Positions 578 to 20,060 of a stretch of DNA of 64,000 nt are shown here, one piece after another. The stretch lies in sequence record OR699282.2. One strand, 5' to 3'. The stretch's first letter is position 1; the number at the start of each line of letters is the position of its first letter. The notes under the pieces were generated by a model. It had not been told where the DNA came from, did no database searches, and was given only the letters and a program-made list of their open reading frames with translations. The position numbers and the translations under genes were made by a program.

Positions 578-597
578 CCACCAGCACAAGCTGGTGG
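578..597. other. two inverted Chi sites forming a hairpin
   Basis: CCACCAGC-ACAA-GCTGGTGG; GCTGGTGG is the enterobacterial RecBCD Chi octamer. Confidence 0.75.
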
Positions 598-776
598 ATT
601 CCCTCTAACAGTATTCAGTACTACATGATAGTCTTCATCCTCCTAGGGTAACATAGTGAGGGCTATGATGGCAGTACTGAATACTCCCTTTCAAAAGATA
701 GATCTATGGTATAGTACTGACGGATTTTGGGTGTAGTTACCCTGGATGGATTTTGGGCGTAGATATGTCTAGCCCT

Positions 777-912
777 CCAGAAGTCTGGAAGTAAAGATGG
801 CTATCCATCTAGACGGCTAAACGGCTAGATTTCTGGATGGCTGGATGGCTAGACGTTTGGACGGCTAAACGGCTAGATGGTTACACGTCTGGAAGTATAG
901 ACGGCTAAATCA
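777..912. repeat. degenerate 8-bp tandem array, 17 units
   Basis: Units such as CTAGACGG, CTAAACGG, CTGGATGG, CTGGAAGT in exact 8-nt register. Confidence 0.85.
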
Positions 913-1059
913 AAATTTTATTTTGTTTTTTCCAATAGTTCCCCTACCGCGTGGGGATAGTTTCCCCGCAGTATCTGGTGTTAGATTTTTCTGAATCTGG
1001 AATCATTATCTTATAAACTGGGGGCAATGTCAACGACCTGGACGGATATTTTTAAAAAT

Positions 1060-1158
1060 TTTTTCAGTACTGAATTTTGGGCGTAACTATGCACCCGGTG
1101 GGCTGGAGTCTTTCTCGACTTGATGGAACTATTATACAGTACTGGAAAAATAAAGCAA
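1060..1158 (-). ncRNA. candidate small RNA cassette, CCCA-GGGTGC family copy 1
   Basis: TTGCTT-16-TATAAT (1158-1131), core AGCCCACCGGGTGC at 1104-1091, no ORF. Confidence 0.45.
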
Positions 1159-1188
1159 TACCCTGGAAGCAAAAAAGTTTTAATTAAT

Positions 1189-1280
1189 TTGCTTGCTATC
1201 CTGGGCCGGACTATGGTACTATAATTCAGTACTGAGAAAGTGCGTTTGCCTGCTAGGGTGCGGGAGTGTATCCTTTTTTT
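1189..1280 (+). ncRNA. candidate small RNA cassette copy 2 (degenerate)
   Basis: Core GCCTGCTAGGGTGC 1248-1261 then GGGAGTGTATCC; weak promoter TTGCTT-17-TATGGT. Confidence 0.3.
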
Positions 1281-1284
1281 ATAT

Positions 1285-1374
1285 CTTGAATTTTGGGCGT
1301 AATTCCGCACCCTCTGGGGTTTCCGCTTTCTCGTGTCTATGTAGTAATTATACGCTTTTTCAGGATCAAGTCAA
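1285..1374 (-). ncRNA. candidate small RNA cassette copy 3
   Basis: TTGACT-16-TATAAT (1374-1347), core ACCCCAGAGGGTGC 1320-1307. Confidence 0.4.
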
Positions 1375-1526
1375 TACCTAAAAACAAAATAATTGAAAAT
1401 AATTTAACGCGTTTAAACGGCCTGTAAAGCCCTGGAATGATTGGAATGGTGCAAATGTATAGCTTATGTGTATTAATGCGTTAGAATGCGTCTGAGGCCG
1501 TTTTTTGGGGTGTAGTAGTGATTTGG

Positions 1527-1619
1527 TTGATTCAGTACTGAATAATAGTACTCCTATATAGAAAGATAGTTCCCCTGGATTGATTCAGTACTGAATAATA
1601 GTACTCCTATATAGAAAGA
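1527..1619. repeat. 40-bp direct repeat, 2 copies, period 53
   Basis: TTGATTCAGTACTGAATAATAGTACTCCTATATAGAAAGA at 1527 and 1580. Confidence 0.85.
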
Positions 1620-1733
1620 AAACTATTTTAAAAGTATTTGTAGAAAGTACTTGCACCGTACTGATAAAAGCGTATAATGTTTTACATCGAGAGCGGGAAC
1701 ACTTCCCGCTACACTTTAAAAGAGATGAAAACG

Positions 1734-2096
1734 ATGGCGACTCAAATCAATAAAATCATGCTTAACCTGGTAAACTTCCGCGATGAGATGAAAGGTCTTC
1801 CGGCTGAAACTGTAAAAATTCACATTGCAGCTTATCGGGAACTTATTGCAATGTTGCCGCTTAAGCGTGAACAATACGCCGCTACTTTGATGCTGGATTC
1901 AATGATCCATATAATGATCTCAAATGATTTGACGATGGTTTATCAGTATATGGGCGAAAATTTCGCGGTGTGTAGTAAGCCAGTACCAGGGATGGCAACA
2001 ACTGAGGAATTGCACGGCTTAAACTTAAAACAAGATGCATGGGATAATATGCCTCGTTTCCTGGTATGGGCTGACAGTGGCAAAATTTACAAATAA
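1734..2096 (+). CDS. hypothetical early protein
   Basis: Promoter 1651, leader hairpin, SD, start moved from 1677 to MATQ. Confidence 0.8.
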   Translation: MATQINKIMLNLVNFRDEMKGLPAETVKIHIAAYRELIAMLPLKREQYAATLMLDSMIHIMISNDLTMVYQYMGENFAVCSKPVPGMATTEELHGLNLKQDAWDNMPRFLVWADSGKIYK

Positions 2097-2190
2097 GTTT
2101 AATAAAGTACTTGCATACTAAGTTAAAACAAGTATAATACTTTCTATCAGGTGGGGAATAGTTCCCCACTATAATTAAGAGATTAATTTT

Positions 2191-2424
2191 ATGAGTACTA
2201 TTTTAACTGTTTCTCAATCCGTTGCACTGACTGACCTATTAAACGCTTTAAGCCGTTGCACTGAGGTTGGCTTGTTTGATGTGGTTGACGTTGCACCGGA
2301 CGTTATTAATCATTTTTGTGATGCGATGGAAGAATGTAAGGAAGATGATAGCCGTATGATGGCGGTCGCCTTTGAGGAAGTACAGCCAGGTGAGATCAAA
2401 GGTTTACCAGTACTGAAAAAATAG
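2191..2424 (+). CDS. hypothetical early protein
   Basis: ORF behind promoter 2111 and leader hairpin. Confidence 0.8.
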   Translation: MSTILTVSQSVALTDLLNALSRCTEVGLFDVVDVAPDVINHFCDAMEECKEDDSRMMAVAFEEVQPGEIKGLPVLKK

Positions 2425-2506
2425 TACTTGCAAACTAAGTTTAAAAGCGTATAATGTTTTACATCAGGTGGGGAATAGTTCCCCACTATATAAGAGGATT
2501 AAAAAA

Positions 2507-2746
2507 ATGGCAAAATCAAAAATGTTCTTAGGTCACAAAAACAAAACTCATTGGAATGTAAGCCTGTGGATTAATAACGATGAGGGATTGTATCGGTTGG
2601 CCCTGGATTTTATTAACGACAACACTAATCGCAATGATGCGGCCCGTCATATGATGTTATTTTTAGAACAGACTGGACAAGATAAAACACCGGACGGATT
2701 CAAATATAGCACTACTGCGATCCGTGCGGCGATGGTTGGAATGTAA
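2507..2746 (+). CDS. conserved phage protein, GHKNKTHWNVSLWINN family; paralog of 4620
   Basis: SD GAGG, paralog shares identical 3' DNA. Confidence 0.85.
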   Translation: MAKSKMFLGHKNKTHWNVSLWINNDEGLYRLALDFINDNTNRNDAARHMMLFLEQTGQDKTPDGFKYSTTAIRAAMVGM

Positions 2747-2836
2747 TAGAATAGAATTTATTTAAAGTACTATCGCAAAAAATGATAGTACTTTATAATA
2801 GTGTTTTATTCATACACCAACGATAAGGGCAACAGC

Positions 2837-3103
2837 ATGAATATTAAGTATTTTGCGACGCGTGAACAAGCTCGGATCGCCGCACGCCAGGACGGGGCAA
2901 CGTTTAAAGATATGGGCGTACAATCGGAACGTGGTAAACGTTGGGCCATTGTAAAGCGTAGTACCGCCAGATCATTACAGTACTGGTTAGCGGCCTTAAA
3001 AAGTCCCGATAGTGTATCGCGTCGAGTGGTAGAAATAAAGCTCGACCGAAAGGGCAACCGCGTGACCGTGTACCGTACTAAAAAGATTGCAGTACTTGAA
3101 TAA
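2837..3103 (+). CDS. hypothetical protein, paralog of 16016
   Basis: Shared motifs FATRExAR..FKDMG..RWA and DRKGNRVTVY. Confidence 0.8.
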   Translation: MNIKYFATREQARIAARQDGATFKDMGVQSERGKRWAIVKRSTARSLQYWLAALKSPDSVSRRVVEIKLDRKGNRVTVYRTKKIAVLE

Positions 3104-3190
3104 AAAGTACTTGCAAACTAAGTTTAAAAGCGTATAATGTTTTACATCGAGAGCGGGAACACTTCCCGCCTATAACCTGGAGTAATAAAA

Positions 3191-3421
3191 ATGACTAATA
3201 TGTATATGACTGAAGTTAAAACCGTAAAAGATACTACCACAAATAAAGTTACTTACTTACAGCGGATCTGTGGTGTATGGCAACGTATCAGCAAATCAAA
3301 GTACTTTAAATTAACATCATATGCAAACCGTTCGGATTCATTCAGTACTGAAATAAAAGGTAATAAAGTACACCAATATGGCACTTATTATTATTATAGC
3401 CTGGACGCGATTGCAGTATAA
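3191..3421 (+). CDS. hypothetical early protein
   Basis: Promoter 3111, SD GGAG. Confidence 0.8.
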   Translation: MTNMYMTEVKTVKDTTTNKVTYLQRICGVWQRISKSKYFKLTSYANRSDSFSTEIKGNKVHQYGTYYYYSLDAIAV

Positions 3422-3451
3422 GCAGTTTACAAATCTTTACAATTGCCGGTA

Positions 3452-3535
3452 TTGACTTATTTTGTCAGTACTGGCATAATGTATTCATTGGCAGATAAGC
3501 CGTAGCCCATAGGGTGCGGGAGTGTATCTATAGAA
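3452..3535 (+). ncRNA. candidate small RNA cassette copy 4
   Basis: TTGACT-17-CATAAT, core AGCCCATAGGGTGC 3504-3517, GGGAGTGTATCT. Confidence 0.5.
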
Positions 3536-3544
3536 AAATTAGTT

Positions 3545-3624
3545 TAGTATAGTTACAATTGTGCACCCGGTGGGTTAGCTGTTGTCATGTGGTATATTAT
3601 GCCAGTACTTGATAATGCTGTCAA
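3545..3624 (-). ncRNA. candidate small RNA cassette copy 5 (convergent with copy 4)
   Basis: TTGACA-17-CATAAT (3624-3596), core AACCCACCGGGTGC 3576-3563. Confidence 0.5.
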
Positions 3625-3705
3625 TACTTTTTTTTACTATTCAGTACTGAAAACTATTTTTAAAAAGTACTTGCAAACTATGTTTAAAGGCGTATAATGT
3701 TTTAC

Positions 3706-3780
3706 ATCAGGACGGGGAACGAAATAAGTAACTTCCCGTTAAGTAGCCCAGGAGTAAGGCACACGAAAAACTCCCCTGAT
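3706..3780 (+). ncRNA. candidate three-way-junction RNA, copy 1
   Basis: Behind promoter 3671; ATCAGG/CCTGAT closing stem, ACGGG/CCCGT and GGAG/CTCC arms; no ORF before the next promoter at 3789. Confidence 0.5.
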
Positions 3781-3848
3781 AAAATAGTTTGACAAATGTT
3801 TTTAAAAGCGTATAATACTTACATCAACTACTGAATGAGGGTTACAAA

Positions 3849-4537
3849 ATGAAAACTATCACTACTACTACTTTCGTTATGGATTTTTCTGAATTGAACG
3901 CAGAACAAAAAACGTCAGCTATCGAACTGGTTCGGGAACGTGAAAAAAACTCAAACGACATTTTTCTGAATTGAACGCAGAACAAAAAACGTCAGCTATC
4001 GAACTGGTTCGGGAACGTGAAAAAAACTCAAACGACAATTATTTTTCTGAAAGTGAAATTGAATACTATAAAGAAACAGTACTACCGGAATATGGCATTA
4101 ATGACGCTGAAATACAATTCAGTGGTTTTTGGTCCCAGGGTGACGGTGCATCAATCAGTACTGACCACGTTGACGCAGTGAAGTTTTTACGCAAGGTAAG
4201 AGCATTAACTAAGTATCGCTCAATCCGTCACTTGCTGAATGAAGATGATTTGGCGATGAGTGTAAAGCGTTCGCACTCCCACTACTCGCATGAGAATACT
4301 GTAAGCGGGTACATTGAATCGGCTTACACTGATTTAACCGCAAAACAAGAAACGTTAGTTAATGAGCTTGAGGAACTACTCACTGAAACTATTCGTGAAT
4401 TGTCCCGCAAGTTGTACCGTGATTTAGAGAATGCATATGAGGATCAATTCACTACTGAAAACATTACGGCACTGATTGAGGGTAACGAGTATCAATTCAA
4501 TGTTATTGATGGCGTAGTGGAATCAATCGAATATTAA
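3849..4537 (+). pseudogene. FSGFWSQGDGA-motif phage/plasmid protein, frameshifted by a 77-bp tandem duplication
   Basis: ATG 3849 with SD GAGG; 3884-3960 repeated at 3961-4037; reading stops at ..NDIFLN*, rest is in ORF 3971-4537. Confidence 0.65.
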
Positions 4538-4619
4538 TTTAAAAAGTACTTGTTTAAAGGCGTATAATACTTTATATCGAGGCGGGGAGTGGTTCCCCGC
4601 TCAAACGAGGATTAAAAAA

Positions 4620-4859
4620 ATGGCTAGTACTAAAACTTACAACGGGCACAAAAACAAAACTCATTGGAATGTAAGCCTTTGGATTAATAACGGTGAGTCA
4701 TTGTATCGGCTTGCTCAAAGTTGCATCGCACAAAGTAGAACTAAAGATATTGCAGCGGAATGTATGTACCGCAGATTAAAAGCCAACGGTACTACTACAA
4801 CGCCGGACGGATTCAAATATAGCACTACTGCGATCCGTGCGGCGATGGTTGGAATGTAA
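4620..4859 (+). CDS. conserved phage protein, paralog of 2507
   Basis: GHKNKTHWNVSLWINN and TPDGFKYSTTAIRAAMVGM identical. Confidence 0.85.
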   Translation: MASTKTYNGHKNKTHWNVSLWINNGESLYRLAQSCIAQSRTKDIAAECMYRRLKANGTTTTPDGFKYSTTAIRAAMVGM

Positions 4860-4916
4860 TATTCAGTACTGAGATAATGGCGGGTAATAGTTCCCGCCTT
4901 TACTGAGGGTTATCTA

Positions 4917-5204
4917 ATGAGTAAAGTAATAAAGTACAATGTGTTAAGCAAATCATTGTCTATCAGTGAATGCACCGATGGTTTTTGGATGTACGATGAA
5001 ACGCGTGGCATGAATTTAGCTATGCGTGCAAAAACTGCTGAGGCGGCGTATATTCAAGCACTGGAATACTACCAGGAACGTTTAAAGGAAGTAGAAGAAG
5101 ATTATAAAAGCCTCAAAGCGAAAGTAGATCATTTCGTCGGTCAATTCGTGGAAGACAACGACGAGGACGGGCACTACTGCGACCGTTGCGGATCTTACAG
5201 TTAA
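4917..5204 (+). CDS. hypothetical protein
   Basis: ORF with SD GAGG. Confidence 0.8.
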   Translation: MSKVIKYNVLSKSLSISECTDGFWMYDETRGMNLAMRAKTAEAAYIQALEYYQERLKEVEEDYKSLKAKVDHFVGQFVEDNDEDGHYCDRCGSYS

Positions 5205-5221
5205 GTACTGAGGATTATCTA

Positions 5222-5425
5222 ATGAGTGATTTAATCGACCGCATCAAAGAGCTTGAAGAAAAAGAATTGCAGTTGATCGGGTTACGGAATAAAGTATTCC
5301 ATGATTTAGGTGGCTTTATTAATGCCTGGGATAGTGGCGATCCTGATGCGTTACCTGCTAACCGCCAGGCGATGATCAATGATGTGCGTGGTGTCTTTGA
5401 GTATGTTTTAAAGCAATTAAATTAA
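5222..5425 (+). CDS. hypothetical protein
   Basis: SD GAGG, start moved to MSDLI. Confidence 0.75.
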   Translation: MSDLIDRIKELEEKELQLIGLRNKVFHDLGGFINAWDSGDPDALPANRQAMINDVRGVFEYVLKQLN

Positions 5426-5511
5426 AAAAGTACTTGCAATTAGTTTTCAGTACTGTATAATGGTTTACATCAAAGGGAGAAATGGTTCTCCCTGGTAATG
5501 AGGAAAATAAA

Positions 5512-5733
5512 ATGGCAAATATCACTACTCTTTCCCAACTGGAAGCACTGGTTAAATCTATGCGGGAACATGCCGACAAAATCGGCGTACAAGATCCAGC
5601 CGTTTGCTTCTGCGACGAATTGAATGATGATACCCTGGTAATAGCAGAAGTCCAGGACGTTTCTAACTATTCCTCGCGTTACACTGGCGGCGTAGCAAAT
5701 AAAGGTGACTTCTGTTTATACCTTACAAAATAA
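5512..5733 (+). CDS. hypothetical early protein
   Basis: Promoter 5434, leader hairpin, SD GAGG. Confidence 0.8.
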   Translation: MANITTLSQLEALVKSMREHADKIGVQDPAVCFCDELNDDTLVIAEVQDVSNYSSRYTGGVANKGDFCLYLTK

Positions 5734-5764
5734 CAACGCGGGGAGATAATAACTCCCCGTTACT

Positions 5765-5868
5765 TTTTCAGTACTGAATCATTTAATAGACGGATCTCGG
5801 CACCCGGTGGGTTAGTGACTGTTTCGTCTTGATGTAGTAATTATGCCAGTACTGGATGCACTTGTCAA
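5765..5868 (-). ncRNA. candidate small RNA cassette copy 6
   Basis: TTGACA-17-CATAAT (5868-5840), GAC-GAAACA-GTC hairpin, core AACCCACCGGGTGC 5813-5800. Confidence 0.5.
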
Positions 5869-5975
5869 CAACTATTTTTCAAATACTTTTTATTAAAATA
5901 CTTGCTAATAGTTTTTAAACGCGTATAATGTTTTGCATAGGGGAGCGGTTCCCCTGGTAACTAAGGAATAAGAAA

Positions 5976-6212
5976 ATGCTTGAACAAATCAAATCAACGT
6001 CTGCTAATGTAACGGGAACGGTATCACACTTTATTGGTGATGAATCGCGGGGCGTTCCCTATTGTGCTGTACATGTAAACACTGAGGGTAACTACTGGTT
6101 TACGGTTTACGGATCATATTCATTTGGACGGCCAGGGCATCAAAAAATTCTGGATAAAGTACAGCCAACGGGTAAAAATATCACGGCTGAAATGTTTTAT
6201 AAAAAATCATAA
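5976..6212 (+). CDS. hypothetical early protein
   Basis: Promoter 5902, SD AAGG. Confidence 0.8.
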   Translation: MLEQIKSTSANVTGTVSHFIGDESRGVPYCAVHVNTEGNYWFTVYGSYSFGRPGHQKILDKVQPTGKNITAEMFYKKS

Positions 6213-6296
6213 AGTACTTGATAATAGTTTTTAGTACTGTATAATATTTTACATAGCACGGGGGAGCGGTTCCCCCTGGTAACTAAGGATAATCAA

Positions 6297-6596
6297 ATGA
6301 AAATTGCAATCATCGCCCTGGCTTTATCTGTTTCCTCTTTCGCTGTTAATGCGTCGTTAGATGTGAGTAGTGAAAAATTCATTCAGTGCACTGTTGCGAT
6401 GACCAATGAAAGTACGGGCGAGATTGTTTTAAAGGATTTAGAGATCCAGCCACAAGCATTTAAAAACGGGCCGTTCCATGAAGAAGACGAAAACGGTAGC
6501 ACAACCATTTACTATGATGCCAGTACTAAACGCGGTTCGGTCACGGTTATGGATACTGAGAAAGTAACTCATACAGGCGTTATTAATTGCCGTTGA
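6297..6596 (+). CDS. hypothetical exported protein
   Basis: N-terminus MKIAIIALALSVSSFAVNA looks like a Sec signal peptide; two Cys. Confidence 0.75.
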   Translation: MKIAIIALALSVSSFAVNASLDVSSEKFIQCTVAMTNESTGEIVLKDLEIQPQAFKNGPFHEEDENGSTTIYYDASTKRGSVTVMDTEKVTHTGVINCR

Positions 6597-6617
6597 TTGA
6601 TACTACGGGGTAACATC

Positions 6618-6848
6618 ATGACAGCACGAATAGTTTTACTTAACGAAAGCAGTACTACACAACTACTTAACGCCGTGCATTATGATATTGAAACGAGCGT
6701 TAATCTTATCAGTACTGTCGTACTGTTGGACACTGGAAAGGTCGCCAATGATAAAGCGATTGCAGGTATACTAACGGATCTTGAGCCTGGTAGCAGTGCA
6801 CCAATAACGTTAAATGGTAAAGTGTTTAACATTTTACTTACTGATTAA
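6618..6848 (+). CDS. hypothetical protein
   Basis: ORF followed by terminator. Confidence 0.7.
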   Translation: MTARIVLLNESSTTQLLNAVHYDIETSVNLISTVVLLDTGKVANDKAIAGILTDLEPGSSAPITLNGKVFNILLTD

Positions 6849-6854
6849 GTACAT

Positions 6855-6876
6855 AGCCCACCTGGTGGGCTTTTTT
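6855..6876 (+). terminator. intrinsic terminator
   Basis: AGCCCAC-CTG-GTGGGCT then T-tract. Confidence 0.85.
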
Positions 6877-6965
6877 GTTTTTGTAGTATCGTAGTACTGA
6901 GATACTTTGAAAATAGTTTTAAAAAAGTAGTTGACATTACCGCAGAAAAGCGTAGAATGTATTAC

Positions 6966-7038
6966 ATCAAGACGGGGAGCACTAAGTAGACCGCCAGTAA
7001 GTCGAACGAAAAACTGGACACGTCGAGAAAACTTTGAT
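6966..7038 (+). ncRNA. structured leader, variant of the three-way-junction RNA
   Basis: ATCAAG/TTTGAT closing stem, shared TAAGTAG and CCAG-TAAG-N4-ACGAAAAA-CTGG modules. Confidence 0.4.
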
Positions 7039-7081
7039 ACACTAATAAACGTAAACTAAACTTTAATTGAGGATTTATAAA

Positions 7082-7564
7082 ATGGCTAATGTAAAATCAT
7101 TCATCAAAGCACTGGTAGCAAATGAAACTAACGTCGCGGCTGAGATCCTGGCTGAACTGGATAACGATACCATGAAAGCGGTACGCAATAATTTTAACAT
7201 CGCGTACAGTACTGCGAAAGAACTACAAGCAAATAAAGCGGCAGAAATTGAAGCGGCAAAGGCGGCCCGTGAAGCAGAACTACAAGCAACAATCGAAAGT
7301 ATTCAGGCGGCAGTAGTTGGATTGGATCTGGAAGTAGTTACAGAGATGGCACAAAAAGCCCTGGCGGTTAAGTATGGGGAAGACAAGCCAGAAGTAAAAG
7401 CCAAAAAATGGATTCAGGAACGCGTAGCGGTAGTACTGGACAACGGGGAAGAATATCTGATTCCGGTGCGTGGTAACTGTATTGCGGTAGTACTGGACGC
7501 GATTAACTCCAGTGGTATGACTCGCGAGGAATGGATCGAAGCTCATCGCAAAGTTGAAGCATAA
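7082..7564 (+). CDS. H-NS/StpA-like protein (diverged)
   Basis: Helical N-terminus, Ala/Glu-rich central helix, C-terminus LDNGEEYLIPVRGNCIAVVLDAINSSGMTREEW aligns by eye to H-NS [34 protein letters not shown]. Confidence 0.6.
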   Translation: MANVKSFIKALVANETNVAAEILAELDNDTMKAVRNNFNIAYSTAKELQANKAAEIEAAKAAREAELQATIESIQAAVVGLDLEVVTEMAQKALAVKYGEDKPEVKAKKWIQERVAVVLDNGEEYLIPVRGNCIAVVLDAINSSGMTREEWIEAHRKVEA

Positions 7565-7585
7565 CAATTAAAGTACTGAATCACT

Positions 7586-7612
7586 AGCCCACCTTAAACG
7601 GTGGGCTTTTTT
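7586..7612 (+). terminator. intrinsic terminator
   Basis: AGCCCACC-TTAAAC-GGTGGGCT then T-tract. Confidence 0.85.
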
Positions 7613-7849
7613 GTGTTTATCGTTTACCAGGCCACCAGCACCGCCTAGAAACGATTCTAACGCATTAAACTGATTATCTGATGCATTGCCCTAGCTGGTG
7701 GCGTTAAGGTCGTTGTAATGCGATTGAGAGCGTTTAAAGTATTTTGCAAAAAGTAATAAAAAGTACTTGCACGATTAAGAGATTAGCGTATAATGTTTTA
7801 CATCGAGAGGGGGAAACGGTTCTCCTTCCAAATCAAAGGAATCAAAACA

Positions 7850-8077
7850 ATGGCTATTATCATTACTCGCGTATCTGGTACTACTGGCAACGAACAAGTA
7901 GTTGCAGTCATTACCAACAAGGAAGGTGCGGAATTGCAAAATGCAATGAATACCTGGGCCGTTAATGAGTTCGGTCAGTGGGCAAGTGTAGCATACATTG
8001 AAACCTATCAAGTGCCGTCGATTAGTTTAACTGATTTGGGCGTTGAGCGTATCCTTTGCCTGGATGAATTAAATTAA
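7850..8077 (+). CDS. hypothetical early protein
   Basis: Promoter 7767, SD AAGGA. Confidence 0.8.
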   Translation: MAIIITRVSGTTGNEQVVAVITNKEGAELQNAMNTWAVNEFGQWASVAYIETYQVPSISLTDLGVERILCLDELN

Positions 8078-12308: not shown

Positions 12309-12312
12309 ACTA

Positions 12313-12395: not shown

Positions 12396-12639
12396 ATAAT
12401 ATTGATCAAAAAATGATCTGATCAATACTTGATCAATTTGCGTAAAGTAGTATAATTCTATGCAGTTGGTTAGACGAAAGGTTATGATTAGTAGTGCAAG
12501 TGTATAAAAATTTTCATGGTGTATCGTTCCGCACATATGGGGATGAATATGTGGTATCATGTGGATTGGAAAAAGTAAGAACAAGTAATATTATTGTCGC
12601 ATTACAGTACTATAGTATTTTTATAATGAGGTTAAAATA

Positions 12640-12897
12640 ATGGCTGTAGGATTCGCGAAAGATGGGGCCGAACAAGACGAGATTAACGCAGTGATTCAGG
12701 CTGCCGTTAACCACGCTAGAAAGCAAATTAACGCACAAATAGAATCACTGATACATTGCCTCGACTGCGGCGATATAATCCCTGAGAAACGACGCCAGGC
12801 CGTTAAGGGATGTAAGTACTGCATAACTTGCCAGGAGGATCATGATAGTACTTTTAAACGTCCCCCGCGTAATTGTTGGCATAGATCTATGAGATAA
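12640..12897 (+). CDS. TraR/DksA C4-type zinc finger protein (YbiI-like)
   Basis: MAVGFAKDGAEQDEI N-terminus with acidic tip, CxxCG-x-IPExRRxA-x3-CxxCxxCQ. Confidence 0.9.
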   Translation: MAVGFAKDGAEQDEINAVIQAAVNHARKQINAQIESLIHCLDCGDIIPEKRRQAVKGCKYCITCQEDHDSTFKRPPRNCWHRSMR

Positions 12898-12961
12898 AAA
12901 GTAATTGACAGTACTGAAAGATAGTGTATAATGTTTTATATCTTAACTGAGGATAGTAATC

Positions 12962-13318
12962 ATGGGAATACAACATATCACGCGTACTACTGACAATGGC
13001 GAGATCACTGGCTATCAAGTACAGGGCAAAGTAGCACAATTGCAGTACTGGTTTGTTAAACGTGGAATCATTGCACCGGATCTTGATTATGACCGTGTAG
13101 CGTTTATTGATTCTCTTTATGTTGATCCTGATAGTCGGGGCAATGGTGAAGGTAACGAATTAATGAATGCCTTTATCGATGCCGCCGATGATTCAGATTG
13201 TATCATCTTAGAATGCGATACGGGAGAAGATAACGCCTTTAATCTTAAAGAATGGTACGAAGGTTTCGGATTCGAGGTATTGATAGATAGTGAATATCCT
13301 ATCATGATTTTATCATAG
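12962..13318 (+). CDS. GNAT-family acetyltransferase
   Basis: IDSLYVDPDSRGNGEG (motif A) and WYEGFGF. Confidence 0.85.
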   Translation: MGIQHITRTTDNGEITGYQVQGKVAQLQYWFVKRGIIAPDLDYDRVAFIDSLYVDPDSRGNGEGNELMNAFIDAADDSDCIILECDTGEDNAFNLKEWYEGFGFEVLIDSEYPIMILS

Positions 13319-13396
13319 TACTTGCATTTAGTTTTCAGTACTGTTATAGTACTTGCATCAAGGGGAAACATCTTCCCCTACTAAGAGGAAATAAAA

Positions 13397-13585
13397 ATGG
13401 AAAACTTATCAAGTATTTTAGTACAAGATGATTTCGGTAATCCTGGAAGTGCTATCATTGTTCGGGGTAATAAAGCAACATTTGTTATTGCTGGTGGACC
13501 TGTACAGCGTAGCATTAAAAACAATGCCGTTACTATTAATAATGTACGCTATCGCTTAGATAAAGAATTGATTCATAAACTGTAA
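13397..13585 (+). CDS. hypothetical protein
   Basis: Promoter 13322, SD GAGG. Confidence 0.75.
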   Translation: MENLSSILVQDDFGNPGSAIIVRGNKATFVIAGGPVQRSIKNNAVTINNVRYRLDKELIHKL

Positions 13586-13612
13586 TATTAATTTAATAGA
13601 GGATAACAATAA

Positions 13613-13936
13613 ATGTACATTCATACTACTATCACAAAGGAAGTCCGTTGCCAGTTCGAAAGTATTCCGGGCGTATGTTTCATCACTGGTACGTTTTCCC
13701 CTGGTGATCGTGATAATCCAGTACTGTTACAATTACGCCATCCATCATGGGATAAAGCATTTGATCTACCGTTGAATGAATTCGCAACTACTGCTGAAAA
13801 GTACATTAAAAATATTCGCGAGAATGATCGACTATTCATTAATGCTTTTAGTGATTCCGCGTTAAGCGAGATCCACGGCGTATTGGTTGCAATCATGGAA
13901 TCAATGCAGAAAACTAAATTCAAACAAGGTGAATAA
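13613..13936 (+). CDS. hypothetical protein
   Basis: SD GAGG. Confidence 0.75.
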   Translation: MYIHTTITKEVRCQFESIPGVCFITGTFSPGDRDNPVLLQLRHPSWDKAFDLPLNEFATTAEKYIKNIRENDRLFINAFSDSALSEIHGVLVAIMESMQKTKFKQGE

Positions 13937-14019
13937 AAACTATTGACAATGCAATCCAGTACTGTATAATAAGTTACATGAAGGGGAGAAATGATTCTCC
14001 CCACTGAGAGGAAAGAAAA

Positions 14020-14232
14020 ATGCAAGGTCAACTAATCGTTCGTAAATGGTCTGATACTAACGAAAAACCGTGGGATGTACAATACATCGGACCGGATGGG
14101 GTATCACGTTATCAGCCTGGCGTAACGCATAGTACTGAGCAATATGCCGCCGCTCACCGCGAACGCCTGTTAGAATCCATGAAACAGGGATACGGTGAAA
14201 AATTCATTCAAGATCATTGGCTGAAAGATTAA
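14020..14232 (+). CDS. hypothetical early protein
   Basis: Promoter 13943, SD GAGG. Confidence 0.8.
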   Translation: MQGQLIVRKWSDTNEKPWDVQYIGPDGVSRYQPGVTHSTEQYAAAHRERLLESMKQGYGEKFIQDHWLKD

Positions 14233-14249
14233 TAGAAGGAGTACAGCTT

Positions 14250-14342
14250 ATGCAAATGAATCCGATGATTATTGTTTTAGCTGTACTTATGATCATTCAT
14301 GCAATTGTAGAAGTATTAACGCAATCAGGAGTAATAAAATGA
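14250..14342 (+). CDS. small membrane peptide, 30 aa
   Basis: SD AAGGAG, hydrophobic. Confidence 0.55.
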   Translation: MQMNPMIIVLAVLMIIHAIVEVLTQSGVIK

Positions 14343-14512
14343 TTCAAGTAGAATTATCAGTACTGAAAGATCTGTTTTATCGGTTAGGTACTACTGGAGA
14401 GTATCCTAAAAGTGATACCGCAAAACTTTTTGTATCACTCGACTTATGGCAACGCGAACAATTAGTAATGTCCTGGCGTAAAGGTAAAGCAGATAGCGAG
14501 GTGAAAGCATGA
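14339..14512 (+). CDS. hypothetical protein, 57 aa
   Basis: ATGA overlap, SD AGGAG. Confidence 0.65.
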   Translation: MIQVELSVLKDLFYRLGTTGEYPKSDTAKLFVSLDLWQREQLVMSWRKGKADSEVKA

Positions 14513-14658
14513 AAGAATTCTTATTCGAAGTAGTGTTTCAAGGTGTCGGTAGTAACCAACTGATTCGCTCAAGTGGTTACAATGTTAACCAGGCATGGAA
14601 TAACATTAAACAAATGTACCCGAACGCTATCACCTATCGCAACCCGAAAGAAGTTTAA
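14509..14658 (+). CDS. hypothetical protein, 49 aa
   Basis: ATGA overlap, SD GAGG. Confidence 0.65.
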   Translation: MKEFLFEVVFQGVGSNQLIRSSGYNVNQAWNNIKQMYPNAITYRNPKEV

Positions 14659-14676
14659 AAATAATTGAAAAAGGGA

Positions 14677-14785
14677 TTGACTCCGGTCAGTCCCTTTGCT
14701 ATTATATACGCATAGAAACAAATCAGCCCACAGGGTGCATAAATGTATCTATTGTTAGCTGGTGGCTAGTACTGAAAACTATTTT
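14677..14785 (+). ncRNA. candidate small RNA cassette copy 9
   Basis: TTGACT-17-TATTAT, core AGCCCACAGGGTGC 14725-14738, Chi at 14758. Confidence 0.5.
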
Positions 14786-14830
14786 TAAAAAGTACTTGCA
14801 TTGTACTTAGAATCAAGTATAATGTTTTAC

Positions 14831-14903
14831 ATCAGGACGGGGAACGAAACAAGTAACCCCGTTAAGTAGTCCAGGAGTAAGACATACGAAAACCTCCCCT
14901 GAT
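14831..14903 (+). ncRNA. candidate three-way-junction RNA, copy 2
   Basis: Near-identical to 3706-3780, behind promoter 14796, no ORF. Confidence 0.5.
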
Positions 14904-14972
14904 AAAAAAGATTGACAATAGTTTGAAGTACTGATAAAATAATCACATCAACTACTGATAAGGAAACATAAA

Positions 14973-15248
14973 ATGCGGATTCTACTGACAGCTAACGAAA
15001 TCGAACAAGTACTGACTACTAACCTGGAAGACTGGAAACGTGAAGCAGATATCCAGGCGGTTCAATGGCTTAACGATAAGTTAACGCCGGATGACTTAAG
15101 CAAGATTGTAGATCCTCAATTCTACGAAGATATTCACGACACCGCGTTAAGCGTCGAGGATGTACTAGATAAGCACTACATTGATACTGATTTGCAGGTT
15201 TACGGTCGTAAAAACTTTATCACTATTCACGATATTTACAATAATTAA
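14973..15248 (+). CDS. hypothetical early protein
   Basis: Promoter 14912, SD AAGGA. Confidence 0.8.
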   Translation: MRILLTANEIEQVLTTNLEDWKREADIQAVQWLNDKLTPDDLSKIVDPQFYEDIHDTALSVEDVLDKHYIDTDLQVYGRKNFITIHDIYNN

Positions 15249-15334
15249 GTATTGACAAAGTATCTTAGTACTGTATAATAGTTTACATCGAGAGGGGGAA
15301 TGGTTCCCCTCCTAACTAAAAGAGAGAAATAAAA

Positions 15335-15517
15335 ATGGCTAAGTGCACTATCTGTAATAAAGAAATAGTATTAGTTCCAAGTGCCCGTGAACGTGCCGCT
15401 CGGTTCGGTGGCAAAGCGTCAGACTATACAAAAATGTTTACTGCCCATACAGCTTGCCAGGTAGCAAAACGTTCACAAGAAAGCGTAGAATTAATGCGTA
15501 AACTTTCCAAAAAATAA
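15335..15517 (+). CDS. small CxxC..H..C protein
   Basis: MAKCTIC..HTAC; promoter 15252. Confidence 0.75.
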   Translation: MAKCTICNKEIVLVPSARERAARFGGKASDYTKMFTAHTACQVAKRSQESVELMRKLSKK

Positions 15518-15605
15518 GTATTGACAAAGTATCTTAGTACTGTATAATAGTTTACATCAAGTGAGGGGAAACGGTTCCCCTCCTAACAAAGAGAGAGAAA
15601 TAAAA

Positions 15606-15929
15606 ATGGCTATGATCCTTACCCAGAAAGTGGAACTGAAAATTGTAACCTCCTTTGACATTAACGTTAATCGGTGGACTGATTCACACGGCAATACTTA
15701 CCACTCTTGCTACGTGTCTGCTTTAATTGGCGACCGCTGGGAAGACCTGGGACACGAAACCTTTACATACGGTTACGGTACACAAGGCGAATACACGGGC
15801 TTGGAGATCATTAAAGAAACCGTTATAGGTTTCAACCCGAAAGAAAAAGTTATTCACCGCATCGAGGAAGAGATCAACAAAGAAATAACAGTTCGCTACC
15901 ACGATGTAAAACGTAAGAAAGACATGTAA
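15606..15929 (+). CDS. hypothetical protein, paralog of 8398
   Basis: Shared motifs; promoter 15521. Confidence 0.85.
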   Translation: MAMILTQKVELKIVTSFDINVNRWTDSHGNTYHSCYVSALIGDRWEDLGHETFTYGYGTQGEYTGLEIIKETVIGFNPKEKVIHRIEEEINKEITVRYHDVKRKKDM

Positions 15930-16015
15930 TAGAATCCATTTAAAGTACTATTTGACATTGCCCAGATAGTACTTTATAATAGACTCTAACTTGTAGTACT
16001 AACTTAACTAATAGG

Positions 16016-16420
16016 ATGTATACCATGATTACTAAATTCTACGCTACCCGTGAAGCTGCCCGTATTGTTGCACGCGAGGAAGGCGAAACATTTAAAGACA
16101 TGGGCAAAGATGCACCGAAAGGTCAACGCTGGGCCGTACAGTTCAAAGAGATCTCTGATATTGTGAATTCACCGGAGCCAGTACTAACAGCAGCAGAACT
16201 AAAACGAGCGGATTTACTGGCGTCAATACTTGATGCACAAGATGAGTTTATCGCTGATTCTGATATCAAAGTACAGACAAACCATACCGCATGGACTCAC
16301 GCGGATCACCTGGCAAACCTTAAGCGTCCAAGTGAACTGATTCGCAACCAGAAAGAGATCCGACACGACCGTAAGGGTAATCGTGTAACAGTATACAGTA
16401 AACGCCGCCAGGTTATCTAA
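16016..16420 (+). CDS. hypothetical protein, paralog of 2837 with a central insertion
   Basis: FYATREAAR..FKDMG..RWA and DRKGNRVTVY. Confidence 0.8.
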   Translation: MYTMITKFYATREAARIVAREEGETFKDMGKDAPKGQRWAVQFKEISDIVNSPEPVLTAAELKRADLLASILDAQDEFIADSDIKVQTNHTAWTHADHLANLKRPSELIRNQKEIRHDRKGNRVTVYSKRRQVI

Positions 16421-16442
16421 TAACTTGCAGTACTAACAACAC

Positions 16443-16467
16443 GGCGGGATCAGTTCCCGCCTTTTTT
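16443..16467 (+). terminator. intrinsic terminator
   Basis: GGCGGGA-TCAGT-TCCCGCC then T6. Confidence 0.8.
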
Positions 16468-16481
16468 ATAGGACAAACAAA

Positions 16482-16736
16482 ATGATTAAGGTTCAACTAT
16501 ATAAAGATAACATCTTACGGGTACACTATAAAGCACCACAGAGAATCATCACAAAGGCCGTACAGCTTGCTAATGAGTTTATTAATGGTAACCTATTACC
16601 TAGGAAGTTAAGCAACGGGAAACTGCGTGTAATCGACGTGGACACTAACAACAGGATAGTAATCGAGAACACAGGAAAGATAAACCTTTATGAGCATCAA
16701 CAATACAATAAGAAAATAAAACTAATATCACGTTGA
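16482..16736 (+). CDS. possible ParE/RelE-like fold protein
   Basis: Basic 84 aa; pattern KA..G..RKL..VIDV..RIV..HQQYN resembles phage ParE-like proteins. Confidence 0.4.
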   Translation: MIKVQLYKDNILRVHYKAPQRIITKAVQLANEFINGNLLPRKLSNGKLRVIDVDTNNRIVIENTGKINLYEHQQYNKKIKLISR

Positions 16737-16790
16737 CAGTACTCAAATGTTTTAGTACTATATGTACATACCAACACGGGGAGAAACAAA

Positions 16791-17033
16791 ATGATTACTT
16801 TAGAAAAACGTATCAAAGAAACTACATCGCTGGTGGAACTGTTAACAGTACTCAAATGTAAAACTACTCGGTTTAGTACACCGGACTTTATTAATATGGT
16901 TGATGTTAACGGTCGTTATCGTATTGCAGTAGAACAAGGCACGGCAAAAGTATTCAGTACTAAAAACACTAAGGAAGTGATTCACGCGGTTAGTGTGAAA
17001 AAAGTGGTTGCCATTGATAGTAAAGTACTGTAA
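16791..17033 (+). CDS. hypothetical protein
   Basis: SD GGGGAG. Confidence 0.75.
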   Translation: MITLEKRIKETTSLVELLTVLKCKTTRFSTPDFINMVDVNGRYRIAVEQGTAKVFSTKNTKEVIHAVSVKKVVAIDSKVL

Positions 17034-17064
17034 GATAGTTTCATTAACTCAAGGAGAACATGCA

Positions 17065-17649
17065 ATGCGTAATTATACTAAATTCATCCGTACCCTGTCA
17101 GAAATGGAAACCAACAAAGAGATCCTTTCAGCTTGTCGGTTAGCTGGCCTGGAGATCATCGGTGCTGGTTCTTCCCGTATAGTTTTCGCTTTAAATGATC
17201 GGTTAGTGATTAAGGTCGCGAATTGTGATGCGGGTGTAGAACAAAATGAAACTGAATGTAAGGTATGGAATTTTTTAGACTATGACCGCCCTCAGTTGAA
17301 ACAGTACTTTGCAAAGGTGCATATGCATTTATGCGATCCTGATAATATGTTTATCGTTATGGATCGGTTGAGTACTGCAAGCAAAGGCAGTGTGAAGCAC
17401 GTAAACGCGTGCAATGAATTAAAGTACAATATTAAACGTAATGCAATCGAACGCCAGCACCGCTTTGCTGATGCACTACAACACGTTGATGATACATTAT
17501 CAACACTAACGATAAGAGATATCAGAAAACAGAATATCGGCCAGGATCGTAATGGACTTATTAAAGTACTTGATTACGGTTTAACCAGCAATATCTGGAA
17601 TCAGTACTATAAAAAGCGTGATGTGGCAGCAAGTAAGGTAACACGATAA
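17065..17649 (+). CDS. Ser/Thr protein kinase-like protein
   Basis: G-loop IGAGSSRIVF, VIK lysine, alphaC Glu, catalytic DIRKQN, DYG; SD AAGGAG. Confidence 0.85.
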   Translation: MRNYTKFIRTLSEMETNKEILSACRLAGLEIIGAGSSRIVFALNDRLVIKVANCDAGVEQNETECKVWNFLDYDRPQLKQYFAKVHMHLCDPDNMFIVMDRLSTASKGSVKHVNACNELKYNIKRNAIERQHRFADALQHVDDTLSTLTIRDIRKQNIGQDRNGLIKVLDYGLTSNIWNQYYKKRDVAASKVTR

Positions 17650-17667
17650 AAAAGATTAAAAAAGGGA

Positions 17668-17772
17668 TTGACTCCGGTCAGTCCCTTTGCTATTATATAT
17701 CCATTGAGAGATAACTCACTGACCCATAGGGTGCGGAAGTGTATCTATTATATAAGTATTCAGTACTGAAAA
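17668..17772 (+). ncRNA. candidate small RNA cassette copy 10
   Basis: TTGACT-17-TATTAT, TGAG-AGATAA-CTCA, core GACCCATAGGGTGC 17721-17734. Confidence 0.5.
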
Positions 17773-17872
17773 CTATTTGATAAAAAGTACTTGCATTGTA
17801 CTTAGAATCAAGTATAATGTTTTATATCGAGAGGGGGAAATGGTTCTCCCTGGTATATTAAGGAATAAAATC

Positions 17873-18094
17873 ATGACTACAATGACTTGCATTTACGCTT
17901 CCAATCTTCTGAATGATGCGGCCTTTAATGTTGATTCAGAATATCAATGTTATCGGGATGAAAATAAAAAAGTTTTTGTAGTTGATAATAATGGTTTCCA
18001 TATTGAATTGCAATCCGGTTTCACTGGTGTTGATGGTAAATCAGTATGGGGCGTACAGGATGATAAAGGCACATATCATTTTAAACGTAATTAA
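17873..18094 (+). CDS. hypothetical early protein
   Basis: Promoter 17791, SD AAGGA. Confidence 0.8.
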   Translation: MTTMTCIYASNLLNDAAFNVDSEYQCYRDENKKVFVVDNNGFHIELQSGFTGVDGKSVWGVQDDKGTYHFKRN

Positions 18095-18180
18095 GTATTG
18101 ACAAAGTATCTTAGTACTGTATAATAGTTTACATCAAGGGGAGAATAGTTCTCCCCACACCAATAAAAGGAAACATAATT

Positions 18181-18453
18181 ATGTCTAGCTACTCCGCTAC
18201 TATGATCATTAAAGATATGAACGGTAATCCTACTTCTGCTGGTGGATCATTTGGAAACATTAATTTAGATGGTCGGTTATCCATGCAATCAGCAATCGAT
18301 GCAGCGAAAGAAGTTTTTAAGAATGAATGTACTGTTAGTAAGCTGGATTATATGGGATTTGCTATCGAAAAAACTAATCGTTTTGTGAACTACAAAAAAC
18401 CATTGATGATTGATACTAACCTGAAAGCTAACGAAGTGGAGTACTTATTATGA
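18181..18453 (+). CDS. hypothetical early protein
   Basis: Promoter 18098. Confidence 0.8.
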   Translation: MSSYSATMIIKDMNGNPTSAGGSFGNINLDGRLSMQSAIDAAKEVFKNECTVSKLDYMGFAIEKTNRFVNYKKPLMIDTNLKANEVEYLL

Positions 18454-18641
18454 CAGTTGAAGAAGTTAAAAAAGTACTGGCAGTACTACGCTATCATAAT
18501 CATTGCAAGGTGAAGAATGATCCTGATTATCTCGATTCATCCCTGGAAGAGGATACACTACAAGCAATAAGCCATATGCAAACATTAGCAAAGCGTATGA
18601 CTGAAAAGAACATGCCGGACTATATCGGAAATAAAATTTAA
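18450..18641 (+). CDS. hypothetical protein
   Basis: ATGA overlap, SD GGAG. Confidence 0.7.
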   Translation: MTVEEVKKVLAVLRYHNHCKVKNDPDYLDSSLEEDTLQAISHMQTLAKRMTEKNMPDYIGNKI

Positions 18642-18728
18642 AAAGTACTTGCATTGTAGTTAGATTAACGTATAATGTTTTATATCGAGAGGGGGAAATG
18701 GTTTCCCCTCAAGTCCAGGAGATACACC

Positions 18729-18992
18729 ATGAACACTATCGAAATCACTATCAATGCACACGTATACGACAACGTAGTACTGCAAACTACTATGACCGCT
18801 AATGATACCAGTACTTTGCGGAATACTGTTATTAGTGCCGTATGTGCCGCTATCGGTGATGTCGCCCTGGAAAATGCAAAACACGTAAACGATGGTTTCA
18901 CTATGTGCAAACGTGATAACGCAAAACATATCATCGTAGAAGGTTACGGCGGTGTAGAATATAATGTTTATATGAAAAAAGTACTTGCATAA
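18729..18992 (+). CDS. hypothetical early protein
   Basis: Promoter 18649, SD AGGAG. Confidence 0.8.
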   Translation: MNTIEITINAHVYDNVVLQTTMTANDTSTLRNTVISAVCAAIGDVALENAKHVNDGFTMCKRDNAKHIIVEGYGGVEYNVYMKKVLA

Positions 18993-19059
18993 TAACTAAA
19001 ACAAAGTATAATGTTTTGCATAGGGGGAGATATCCTCCCCCACTAAAAGGAGTAATAAA

Positions 19060-19284
19060 ATGGCTAACTTTGATGAACTGATGCGGGAAGTAGCTACCCT
19101 GGCAGAAGAAAAGAAATCATTCGATTCTATCTATAGCACCGCTCACCGTGATTCAGTACTGGCATGTAACCAGGATCAAAAAGATGAACTAATCGCCACC
19201 TATCATGAAGCATGGAAGTACTACCGACAATGGGAGAAAGAAGAAAGAGAGTCTACCATTGACGGCCTCAATAATCTAATCTAA
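19060..19284 (+). CDS. hypothetical early protein
   Basis: Promoter 18985, SD AAGGAG. Confidence 0.8.
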   Translation: MANFDELMREVATLAEEKKSFDSIYSTAHRDSVLACNQDQKDELIATYHEAWKYYRQWEKEERESTIDGLNNLI

Positions 19285-19360
19285 AAGTTTTATTTCAGTA
19301 CTATTGACATAGCTTGATAGTACTGATGTAATAACTTTACTAACTACAAGGGGAAACATA

Positions 19361-19618
19361 ATGGAACAGTTCACACAATATCGGGTAAATCCTCAAGCTA
19401 TGGCCTACGTAGAAGACCATAAAACATTACCAGTACTAACACCAATTAAAGGCCATATCTATCGTGCAATGTCATGGAATACCGCCCAGGATAGATATAC
19501 TACCGCTGGCGTGGGTATGTATTGCGGGAATGGTGAATGGTTTGATCCAAATAATCCGGTAGCCATTGACAGTACTGAAAAAATGAAATGGGCCGACTAC
19601 ATCGAAGATATTTCATAA
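19361..19618 (+). CDS. hypothetical early protein
   Basis: Promoter 19304. Confidence 0.8.
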   Translation: MEQFTQYRVNPQAMAYVEDHKTLPVLTPIKGHIYRAMSWNTAQDRYTTAGVGMYCGNGEWFDPNNPVAIDSTEKMKWADYIEDIS

Positions 19619-19708
19619 AAACTATTTGACAGTACTAACCAGTAATGTATAATGTTTTACATAGAGCGGGGGAATAGTTCTCCCGCCAATAGTTTGGAGT
19701 AAAACATT

Positions 19709-19909
19709 ATGTCTATCGCTATCGCCCTGGTTGAAGTACTGAAAGAAGCTAAAGCCAACCAGATCGACGTAAAGATCCAGGAACTACAAAACGGCGTAAT
19801 CGGCTGTACTTGTACCGCTGGTGGAGCGGCAGACTATCGAGAACACGAATCACTCGAATCACTGGTTCGGTATCTTACCATGATCGTTGATGATTGGAGA
19901 ATCATCTAA
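19709..19909 (+). CDS. hypothetical early protein
   Basis: Promoter 19626, SD GGAG. Confidence 0.8.
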   Translation: MSIAIALVEVLKEAKANQIDVKIQELQNGVIGCTCTAGGAADYREHESLESLVRYLTMIVDDWRII

Positions 19910-19930
19910 CAAAAAAGAATAAAAAAGGGA

Positions 19931-20060
19931 TTGACTCCGGTCAGTCCCTTTGCTATTATATACGCATAGACAAAAACTAGCCCACAGGGTGCATAGGTGT
20001 ATCCAAAATATATAGTTAATAACGGTGAGTAACTATCTGCTGGTGGAGTGAAAACTATTA
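19931..20060 (+). ncRNA. candidate small RNA cassette copy 11
   Basis: TTGACT-17-TATTAT, core AGCCCACAGGGTGC 19979-19992, Chi at 20039. Confidence 0.5.

Follow-up and report, generated by a model that had tools for sequence, protein, structure and literature searches.

Linear phage genomes that enter Escherichia coli expose double-strand ends to the host RecBCD enzyme. Enteric (E. coli) RecBCD recognises the octamer 5′-GCTGGTGG-3′, known as Chi, which is active only on enzyme arriving from its 3′ side. Protein counter-measures to RecBCD include lambda Gam, T7 gp5.9, P22 Abc2 and the end-capping protein gp2 of T4. Other phages carry Chi in their own DNA. In phage P1 and its relatives (P7 and D6), 50 Chi sites have been described that are denser toward the ends at the terminal redundancy, and growth of P1 needs host RecA and RecBCD, proposed to circularise the injected DNA (preprint 10.1101/2021.07.08.451572; PMC12315714). 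Further examples are the lambdoid phage LLS and other phages with no Rec module and high Chi (Zheng et al. 2025, PMC12315714); high Chi in lambdoid phages without a Rec module is also attributed to Bobay et al. 2013, as cited in PMC12315714. Descriptions of end-clustered Chi concern temperate P1-like phages and lambdoid phages without recombination genes, and the current working rule is that a phage with its own recombination genes has no Chi and one without has many. Here, we analyse record OR699282.2, the genome of phage ELP-22, a virulent jumbo phage of 352 kb (unique length) with E. coli as its recorded host. Within the stretch of 64,000 nucleotides that we call the window, Chi sites are clustered in a long direct terminal repeat (DTR).

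Several features of this locus recall P1. The Chi sites of ELP-22 lie in terminally redundant DNA, often in non-coding positions and in both orientations, which gives each end an active site, and recombination between the two repeat copies by RecBCD and RecA is proposed in both cases. P1, however, is temperate and packages headfuls from a pac site with a variable redundancy of 5–10 kb, whereas ELP-22 is virulent and has a fixed 21.3-kb repeat. In P1 Chi is found genome-wide and outnumbers every other octamer; in ELP-22 it is essentially confined to the repeat. ELP-22 also has its own UvsX-type recombination genes, unlike P1, and RecBCD dependence, which has been shown for P1, is putative in ELP-22. 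As in LLS, there is an excess of exact Chi clustered near an end and mostly oriented for RecBCD entering there, but LLS has cohesive ends, no long repeat, no Rec module and no RecBCD inhibitor, and RecBCD gives its growth a measurable benefit. The rule linking Rec modules and Chi fails for ELP-22, which has recombination genes and yet a Chi cluster, in the repeat only. Phages with Gam, gp5.9, Abc2 or gp2 face the same problem of a linear genome that exposes double-strand ends to RecBCD; these are proteins that block the enzyme, whereas the ELP-22 element is a DNA signal that would redirect it.

The E. coli phage T5 offers a structural parallel, having a long fixed direct terminal repeat with pre-early genes, which in T5 is the first-step-transfer DNA. 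The first 50 kb of T5 (NC_005859.1) contain two Chi sites, at 8127 and 8689, both on the + strand and inside the 10,219-bp repeat, with none in the next 40 kb. Two sites (P about 0.006, order 0) are suggestive at best, and T5 has other pre-early mechanisms; the pair is a hint that other coliphages, too, may have Chi in long terminal repeats, with numbers that are too small to carry the point. Full-text searches of the open-access literature returned no report of Chi clustering in the terminal repeats of the phage group to which ELP-22 belongs. The new element here is end-clustered Chi, as in P1 and LLS, that is confined to the fixed repeat of virulent jumbo phages with recombination genes of their own.

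The whole record was assembled from pieces for genome-wide counts. Positions 1–21,279 of the record are identical to 352,210–373,488, giving a DTR of 21,279 bp at both genome ends. The DTR class was assigned to ELP-22 by its authors from PhageTerm analysis (PMC11465974), and the sister phage fEgEco12, which has the same start sequence as ELP-22, has repeats of 20,993 bp that restriction digests bear out (PMC13070987). In three independent public runs (assembled contigs, in which read-end pile-ups are invisible), word depth inside the DTR is about 1.8–2.5 times that outside, which is weak support for the termini because raw reads are missing; the source run is uninformative. The DTR has a guanine plus cytosine (GC) content of 38.7%, against 33.8% in the unique genome. 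The original prediction had placed the Chi sites in an early module. The block of early + strand genes is real, but the prediction was unaware that this block is a DTR present at both ends, and its idea of end protection or recombination becomes considerably stronger for that reason.

An exact search for GCTGGTGG returned 12 occurrences in the window, compared with 0.41 ± 0.62 in 100 dinucleotide shuffles, none of which reached 12. Eleven of these form a cluster at 578–20046, all inside the DTR, with nine on the + strand and two on the − strand. Ten of the cluster had been listed in the original prediction, all at correct coordinates, and the + site at 16829 had been overlooked; the lone Chi that it had seen in the other 43 kb of the window, at 60026 on the − strand, was also the only one found there by exact search. 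The repeat and its sites are as follows.

1–21279, unstranded: left DTR copy, an immediate-early region with about 60 small + strand genes, which holds all 11 clustered Chi sites.
578–597, unstranded: inverted Chi pair, CCACCAGC and GCTGGTGG back to back around the 4-nt spacer ACAA.
578–585, − strand: Chi facing RecBCD from the left terminus, 0.58 kb away.
590–597, + strand: Chi lying farthest in, within the right repeat copy, for RecBCD from the right end.
7632–7639, − strand: second Chi active from the left end; intergenic, about 25 nt downstream of a terminator hairpin at 7586–7607.
7694–7701, + strand: Chi in the same intergenic spacer as 7632, 54 nt apart; intact in four of four relatives.
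12027–12034, + strand: intergenic Chi forming the 3′ arm of a terminator-like hairpin at 12012–12037.
13490–13497, + strand: Chi inside the small coding sequence (CDS) ELP22_0045, frame GCT GGT GG. (Ala-Gly-Gly); intact in four of four relatives.
14758–14765, + strand: intergenic Chi, about 30 nt upstream of a promoter −35 region.
16829–16836, + strand: Chi inside CDS ELP22_0057, frame CTG GTG (Leu-Val).
18238–18245, + strand: Chi inside CDS ELP22_0061, Ala-Gly-Gly frame.
19817–19824, + strand: Chi inside CDS ELP22_0066, Ala-Gly-Gly frame; lost in phage 121Q and intact in three other relatives.
20039–20046, + strand: intergenic Chi nearest the right DTR boundary and, in the right copy, the first that RecBCD from the right terminus would meet, 1,233 bp in.
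60026–60033, − strand: isolated Chi in the unique region, background outside the cluster.

The density of Chi in the 21,279-bp DTR is 5.17 per 10 kb, its 11 sites comparing with expectations of 0.21–0.49 under Markov models of orders 0–4 and 1.37 under order 5 (P for at least 11 sites from 6e-12 to 2e-7 across orders). Both orientations are enriched, with nine sites observed for 0.38 expected and two for 0.08. The 330,930-bp unique genome has 17 Chi, or 0.51 per 10 kb (8.6–13 expected at orders 3–5), and its Chi content is not above the expectation from oligonucleotide composition at these orders. Chi is the top-ranking 8-mer of the DTR at order 5 (11 observed, 1.4 expected) and ranks 877 or worse in the unique genome, where it is no commoner than neighbours such as GGTGGTGG (31 occurrences) and GTTGGTGG (23). 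The profile in 20-kb bins runs 10, 1, 0, 3, 0, 2 and onward, and Chi is thus clustered at the genome end. An equal density elsewhere in the genome, or a host RecBCD that uses a different Chi, would have told against the original prediction; the density differs as above, and the recorded host is E. coli, whose RecBCD reads exactly GCTGGTGG. Three of the 17 Chi in the unique genome, at record positions 339,903, 340,161 and 340,416 (− strand, outside the window), are spaced by about 255 bp and lie in or beside the − strand hypothetical CDS ELP22_0642, the last in a run of RCC1-like repeat genes. These three probably reflect a repeated coding motif and not selection for Chi.

Could the cluster be a by-product of composition or duplication, arising from a GC-richer, host-like repeat or from a repeated intergenic cassette? 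The repeat is indeed richer in GC than the unique genome (38.7% and 33.8%) and is full of repeated promoter and terminator cassettes, and composition may account for the strand bias of the Chi sites. Composition up to order 5, however, predicts at most 1.4 sites, and only the exact octamer is enriched: the 24 variants of Chi with one mismatch add up to four occurrences in the DTR, next to 11 exact copies, every GCTGGTG heptamer there belongs to a full Chi, and 11 of 13 TGGTGG hexamers lie within Chi. Moreover, the DTR has a single copy of CGCTGGCG, the commonest octamer of E. coli, and is therefore not simply host-like, and Chi is more than twice as dense as in E. coli (1 per 4.6 kb) at far lower GC. 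Host-like composition was rejected as the cause on the Markov expectations, the scarcity of one-mismatch variants and the single CGCTGGCG.

Duplication fares no better. Around the sites, information is confined to the octamer, and within the cluster only the similarity between the flanks of 14758 and 20039 exceeds the null. This one similarity would suit a repeated cassette, but the flanks are unrelated in 10 of 11 cases, and a spread of the sites by cassette duplication was rejected. The pattern also recurs in repeats that cannot be aligned with that of ELP-22 (see below). We therefore regard a by-product of composition or duplication as highly improbable, the expectation, specificity and flank analyses having already largely refuted it.

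The sites occupy mostly non-coding positions, as had been predicted: seven of the 11 lie outside credible + strand CDS, in a block that is 30.5% non-coding (p=0.024). The other four lie in small CDS and are read as Ala-Gly-Gly in three and Leu-Val in one. The prediction had further described two inverted pairs as hairpins, one of which stands. At 578/590, two perfectly inverted 8-bp arms around a 4-nt spacer fold into a hairpin of −9.9 kcal/mol (z −4.7); the pair at 7632/7694 was rejected as a hairpin, as it folds no better than shuffled sequence (z −1.6). A second stable structure is the terminator-like hairpin at 12012–12037 (−9.2 kcal/mol, z −4.3), which includes the Chi at 12027.

Chi sites were retained preferentially within the genus Asteriusvirus, as measured against the survival of random octamers in the same alignments. 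All 11 Chi octamers are intact in fEgEco12 and in vB_Ec-M-J, in which 81% and 79% of random octamers are intact, respectively. In 121Q, nine of 11 Chi are intact (random octamers, 54%), and in CMSTMSU 10 of 11 (69%); the CMSTMSU sequence is an UNVERIFIED record with fragmented open reading frames, and its one ‘lost’ Chi may be a sequencing indel. The − site at 7632 is intact in fEgEco12, vB_Ec-M-J and CMSTMSU and mutated in 121Q. None of these Asteriusvirus phages has Chi in the unique DNA flanking the repeat. The terminal inverted pair (578/590) was found in 35 of 35 Asteriusvirus records, and a scan of IMG/VR for CCACCAGC-N4-GCTGGTGG returned 46 contigs of which one was related (121Q itself), the rest being unrelated and mostly of high GC.

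Beyond the genus, relatives were found through a conserved kinase-like gene of the repeat, and Chi clustering in the repeat or start region is seen in four lineages besides ELP-22. The repeats of fENko-Kae01, Muenster and XbC2 are those defined by PhageTerm.

fENko-Kae01 (host Klebsiella aerogenes): repeat of 19,736 bp with 12 Chi on + and two on −; two in 30 kb of adjacent unique DNA.
Muenster (host Klebsiella): repeat of 20,030 bp with seven Chi on + and one on −; none in 25 kb of adjacent unique DNA.
XbC2 (OP292654.1; Xanthomonas, Mimasvirus): repeat at 1–17581, 17,581 bp, with seven Chi on + and two on −; three in 27 kb of adjacent DNA.
EJP2 (host E. coli): repeat not defined; four Chi on + and none on − in the first 7.6 kb.

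The repeats of ELP-22 and Kae01 show no collinear nucleotide alignment, and their Chi arrays have therefore been maintained or rebuilt independently. Chi positions differ between genera. Four Chi of Kae01 lie within the 16–17-nt spacer between −35 and −10 hexamers. A hairpin at Kae01 position 19354 has the loop TGGTTAACGCTG, as in the ELP-22 hairpin at 12027, with a compensatory change in the stem. At 484–503 bp from its left end, Kae01 also has a pair whose 8-bp arms and 4-nt spacing match those of 578/590, here with the spacer TTAA. This placement suggests that Chi has been slotted into tolerant positions, such as promoter spacers and a compensated terminator stem.

The same placements could be taken to mean that the octamer is the site of another factor, such as a phage regulator, a packaging or replication signal or an RNA structure, its identity with Chi being incidental. 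Several sites do lie within promoter spacers or terminator stems, and the annotation of phage G17 gives the terminal pair as a terminator; the pair also stands at a conserved distance from the terminus. XbC2, isolated on Xanthomonas vesicatoria, keeps the octamer as well. On the other side, relatives infect E. coli, Salmonella and Klebsiella, and in phages of these hosts the sequence is enteric Chi to the letter; sites also fall in coding sequence in two frames, have no conserved flank or spacing, and vary in position between genera. The case of XbC2 can be explained by descent, since this phage is a close relative of Cronobacter phage GAP32 and has 37.5% GC, against about 65% in its host. For the same reason it is no clean control; it was dropped as a negative control for host specificity, the enteric octamer being clustered there too, and kept as a caveat. 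The phage either evolved on an enterobacterial host or uses the octamer in a role independent of enteric RecBCD; retention by descent seems plausible, yet leaves room for the latter. Overall, we consider recognition by another factor to be distinctly improbable as the explanation of the arrays.

The orientation of the sites can be read from the rule that Chi acts on RecBCD arriving from its 3′ side, whereby + sites are oriented toward enzyme that enters at the right terminus and − sites toward enzyme that enters at the left. All nine + sites of the right repeat copy point to the right end, the nearest lying 1,233 bp in; those of the left copy that point to the left end are the − sites at 578 and 7632. 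Distances from the left terminus to the first − site in four lineages are 578, 484, 216 and 6,454 bp, a proximity that is significant when combined (Fisher p=0.006, or 0.016 without Kae01), and in each of the four the right terminus is 375–1,233 bp away from the first + site. A correctly oriented Chi thus lies within about 0.2–1.2 kb of each physical end in most lineages.

Taken together, the clustering within the repeat, the specificity for the exact octamer, the use of non-coding slots, the retention within the genus and the recurrence in non-aligning repeats argue for selection of Chi in the repeat. On balance, we think it probable that this selected array halts RecBCD inside the dispensable repeat and loads RecA for recombination of the two repeat copies. 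The steps beyond selection are all ones that we infer. The DTR is the only segment of virion DNA present twice, and also bears both free ends. Upon entry of the genome into E. coli, RecBCD would load on a free end and degrade inward; loss within one repeat would cost nothing, because the other end holds a copy, and loss beyond the repeat would be lethal. RecBCD recognises a Chi site with a probability of 30–40%, and by simple arithmetic nine + sites would let 1–4% of the enzyme escape. At Chi, RecBCD would cease to cut the 3′-ended strand and load RecA onto it. The resulting RecA-coated 3′ tail would be homologous to the repeat at the other end, or to a co-infecting or replicated genome, and repeat-by-repeat recombination could join the DNA into a circle or concatemer that has no free ends, at a time when the recombination proteins of the phage itself, which are expressed later, do not yet exist. 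As a side benefit, fewer RecBCD degradation products would feed adaptation by clustered regularly interspaced short palindromic repeats (CRISPR). The confinement of Chi to the repeat, also in distant relatives, suggests that the host end-processing enzyme is used to save or join the ends. End protection or repeat-mediated recombination through host Chi, as originally predicted, thus appears to be supported by comparative and statistical evidence, although the accompanying framing of Chi as a ‘self signal’ is disputed (preprint 10.1101/2021.07.08.451572).

Much of this evidence would serve equally for pure end protection, or a decoy, with no role in recombination. The array would then attenuate or titrate RecBCD, for example through Chi-dependent inactivation, gaining time for the early genes of the repeat and leaving fewer RecBCD fragments for CRISPR spacer acquisition. 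The positional evidence is the same. Being the immediate-early region, with 11 promoters on the + strand that match the sigma-70 consensus perfectly (TTGACA-N16/17-TATAAT), the repeat must survive first, and the phage's own recombinase can serve the later steps. Against this, published work argues that protection by Chi in cells needs RecA and a homologous partner, and the limitation of Chi to the one duplicated segment is most natural if homology matters. Protection alone is, in our view, an unlikely account, although sequence alone does not separate protection, titration of RecBCD or a lowered CRISPR adaptation from recombination between the repeats.

Several observations weigh against the recombination mechanism favoured here. 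Only two sites face the left end; Muenster has a single one, on − and 6.5 kb in. The strand split of 35:7 (+:−) fits the strand composition, which predicts a + fraction of 0.70–0.85 (p=0.04 to 0.7); strand bias is consequently unusable as evidence and was rejected as a sign of end-specific design. XbC2, from Xanthomonas, keeps the enteric octamer at nine sites in its repeat. The phage is annotated with a UvsX-like recombinase, an SbcC/SbcD-like nuclease, a DprA-like protein and endonuclease VII, and the ELP-22 annotation also lists exonucleases. Lambdoid phages with their own Rec module lack Chi, and Zheng et al. found no phage that was inhibited by RecBCD (PMC12315714). According to Subramaniam and Smith, clear evidence is lacking for protection by Chi in cells apart from recombination. 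A search by name only in the annotation parts examined, with no search for Gam-, Abc2-, gp5.9- or gp2-like proteins, gave no RecBCD inhibitor; the phage may still encode one, since most of the approximately 60 proteins of the repeat are uncharacterised.

The DTR has further features of its own. In window positions 1–20000 on the + strand there are 101 promoter-like sites, against 67 ± 9.5 in shuffles, and perfect or near-perfect promoters precede nearly all of the small DTR genes. With many near-perfect promoters besides the 11 perfect ones, the DTR is an unusually strong immediate-early region for host polymerase. A 28-nt hairpin cassette, AAAGGGATTGACTCCGGTCAGTCCCTTT followed by GCTATTATAT, occurs at 14670–14697, 17661–17688 and 19924–19951, with a variant at 10632–10659; the stem of AAAGGGATTGACTCCGGTCAGTCCCTTT holds a −35-like TTGACT, and each copy is therefore both a terminator-like hairpin and a promoter. 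At the extreme left terminus (window 2–21) lies a short hairpin, GGCAGAGGAAGTCTGCC. fEgEco12 and vB_Ec-M-J share the first 55 nt without a change and show one difference over the first 60. This terminal stretch may belong to a terminase or end-recognition signal. Arrays of back-to-back genes of about 190–260 bp, with overlapping stop and start codons, adjoin both repeat boundaries on the inner side (window 21500–26000 and record 346,700–352,000) and look like a tandemly amplified small-protein family.

A different octamer, the palindromic CAGTACTG with the core AGTACT, exceeds its expected count far more than any other 8-mer of the window and the genome, for example at 523–556 and in intergenic spacers of the DTR. 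Pooled over strands, it occurs 72 times in the repeat (0.5 expected at order 1) and 326 times in the unique genome (8 expected). At Markov order 3 it also ranks first among the 8-mers of the Muenster repeat (122 occurrences) and the XbC2 repeat (56), and is enriched in that of Kae01 (26), where it ranks below Chi. CAGTACTG often stands beside promoters, and may be a clade-wide promoter or operator element, or a motif related to modification or restriction.

For the clade of virulent jumbo phages of Enterobacterales that comprises Asteriusvirus, the Kae01/Munch group, Alcyoneusvirus and Mimasvirus, we suggest tentatively, and with more doubt than conviction, that RecBCD, Chi and RecA together form a built-in first step of infection, the repeat of about 20 kb being a sacrificial buffer with a fail-safe Chi array that turns nuclease attack on the incoming ends into recombination of the repeat copies and so seals or concatenates the genome, and RecBCD a host dependency factor despite T4-like recombination genes. 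If true, these phages would be an exception that sharpens the rule on recombination genes and Chi, with Chi kept only where the DNA is both terminal and duplicated, and there would be a mechanistic reason for the conserved ~20-kb repeats of this large group. The Chi cluster would also be a simple sequence signature by which to locate the physical termini of relatives that were deposited without defined ends. RecBCD and RecA would be host factors affecting the efficacy of phages that are now proposed for therapy against E. coli, Salmonella and Klebsiella, and RecBCD, usually counted as an anti-phage barrier, would be a dependency factor for these phages.

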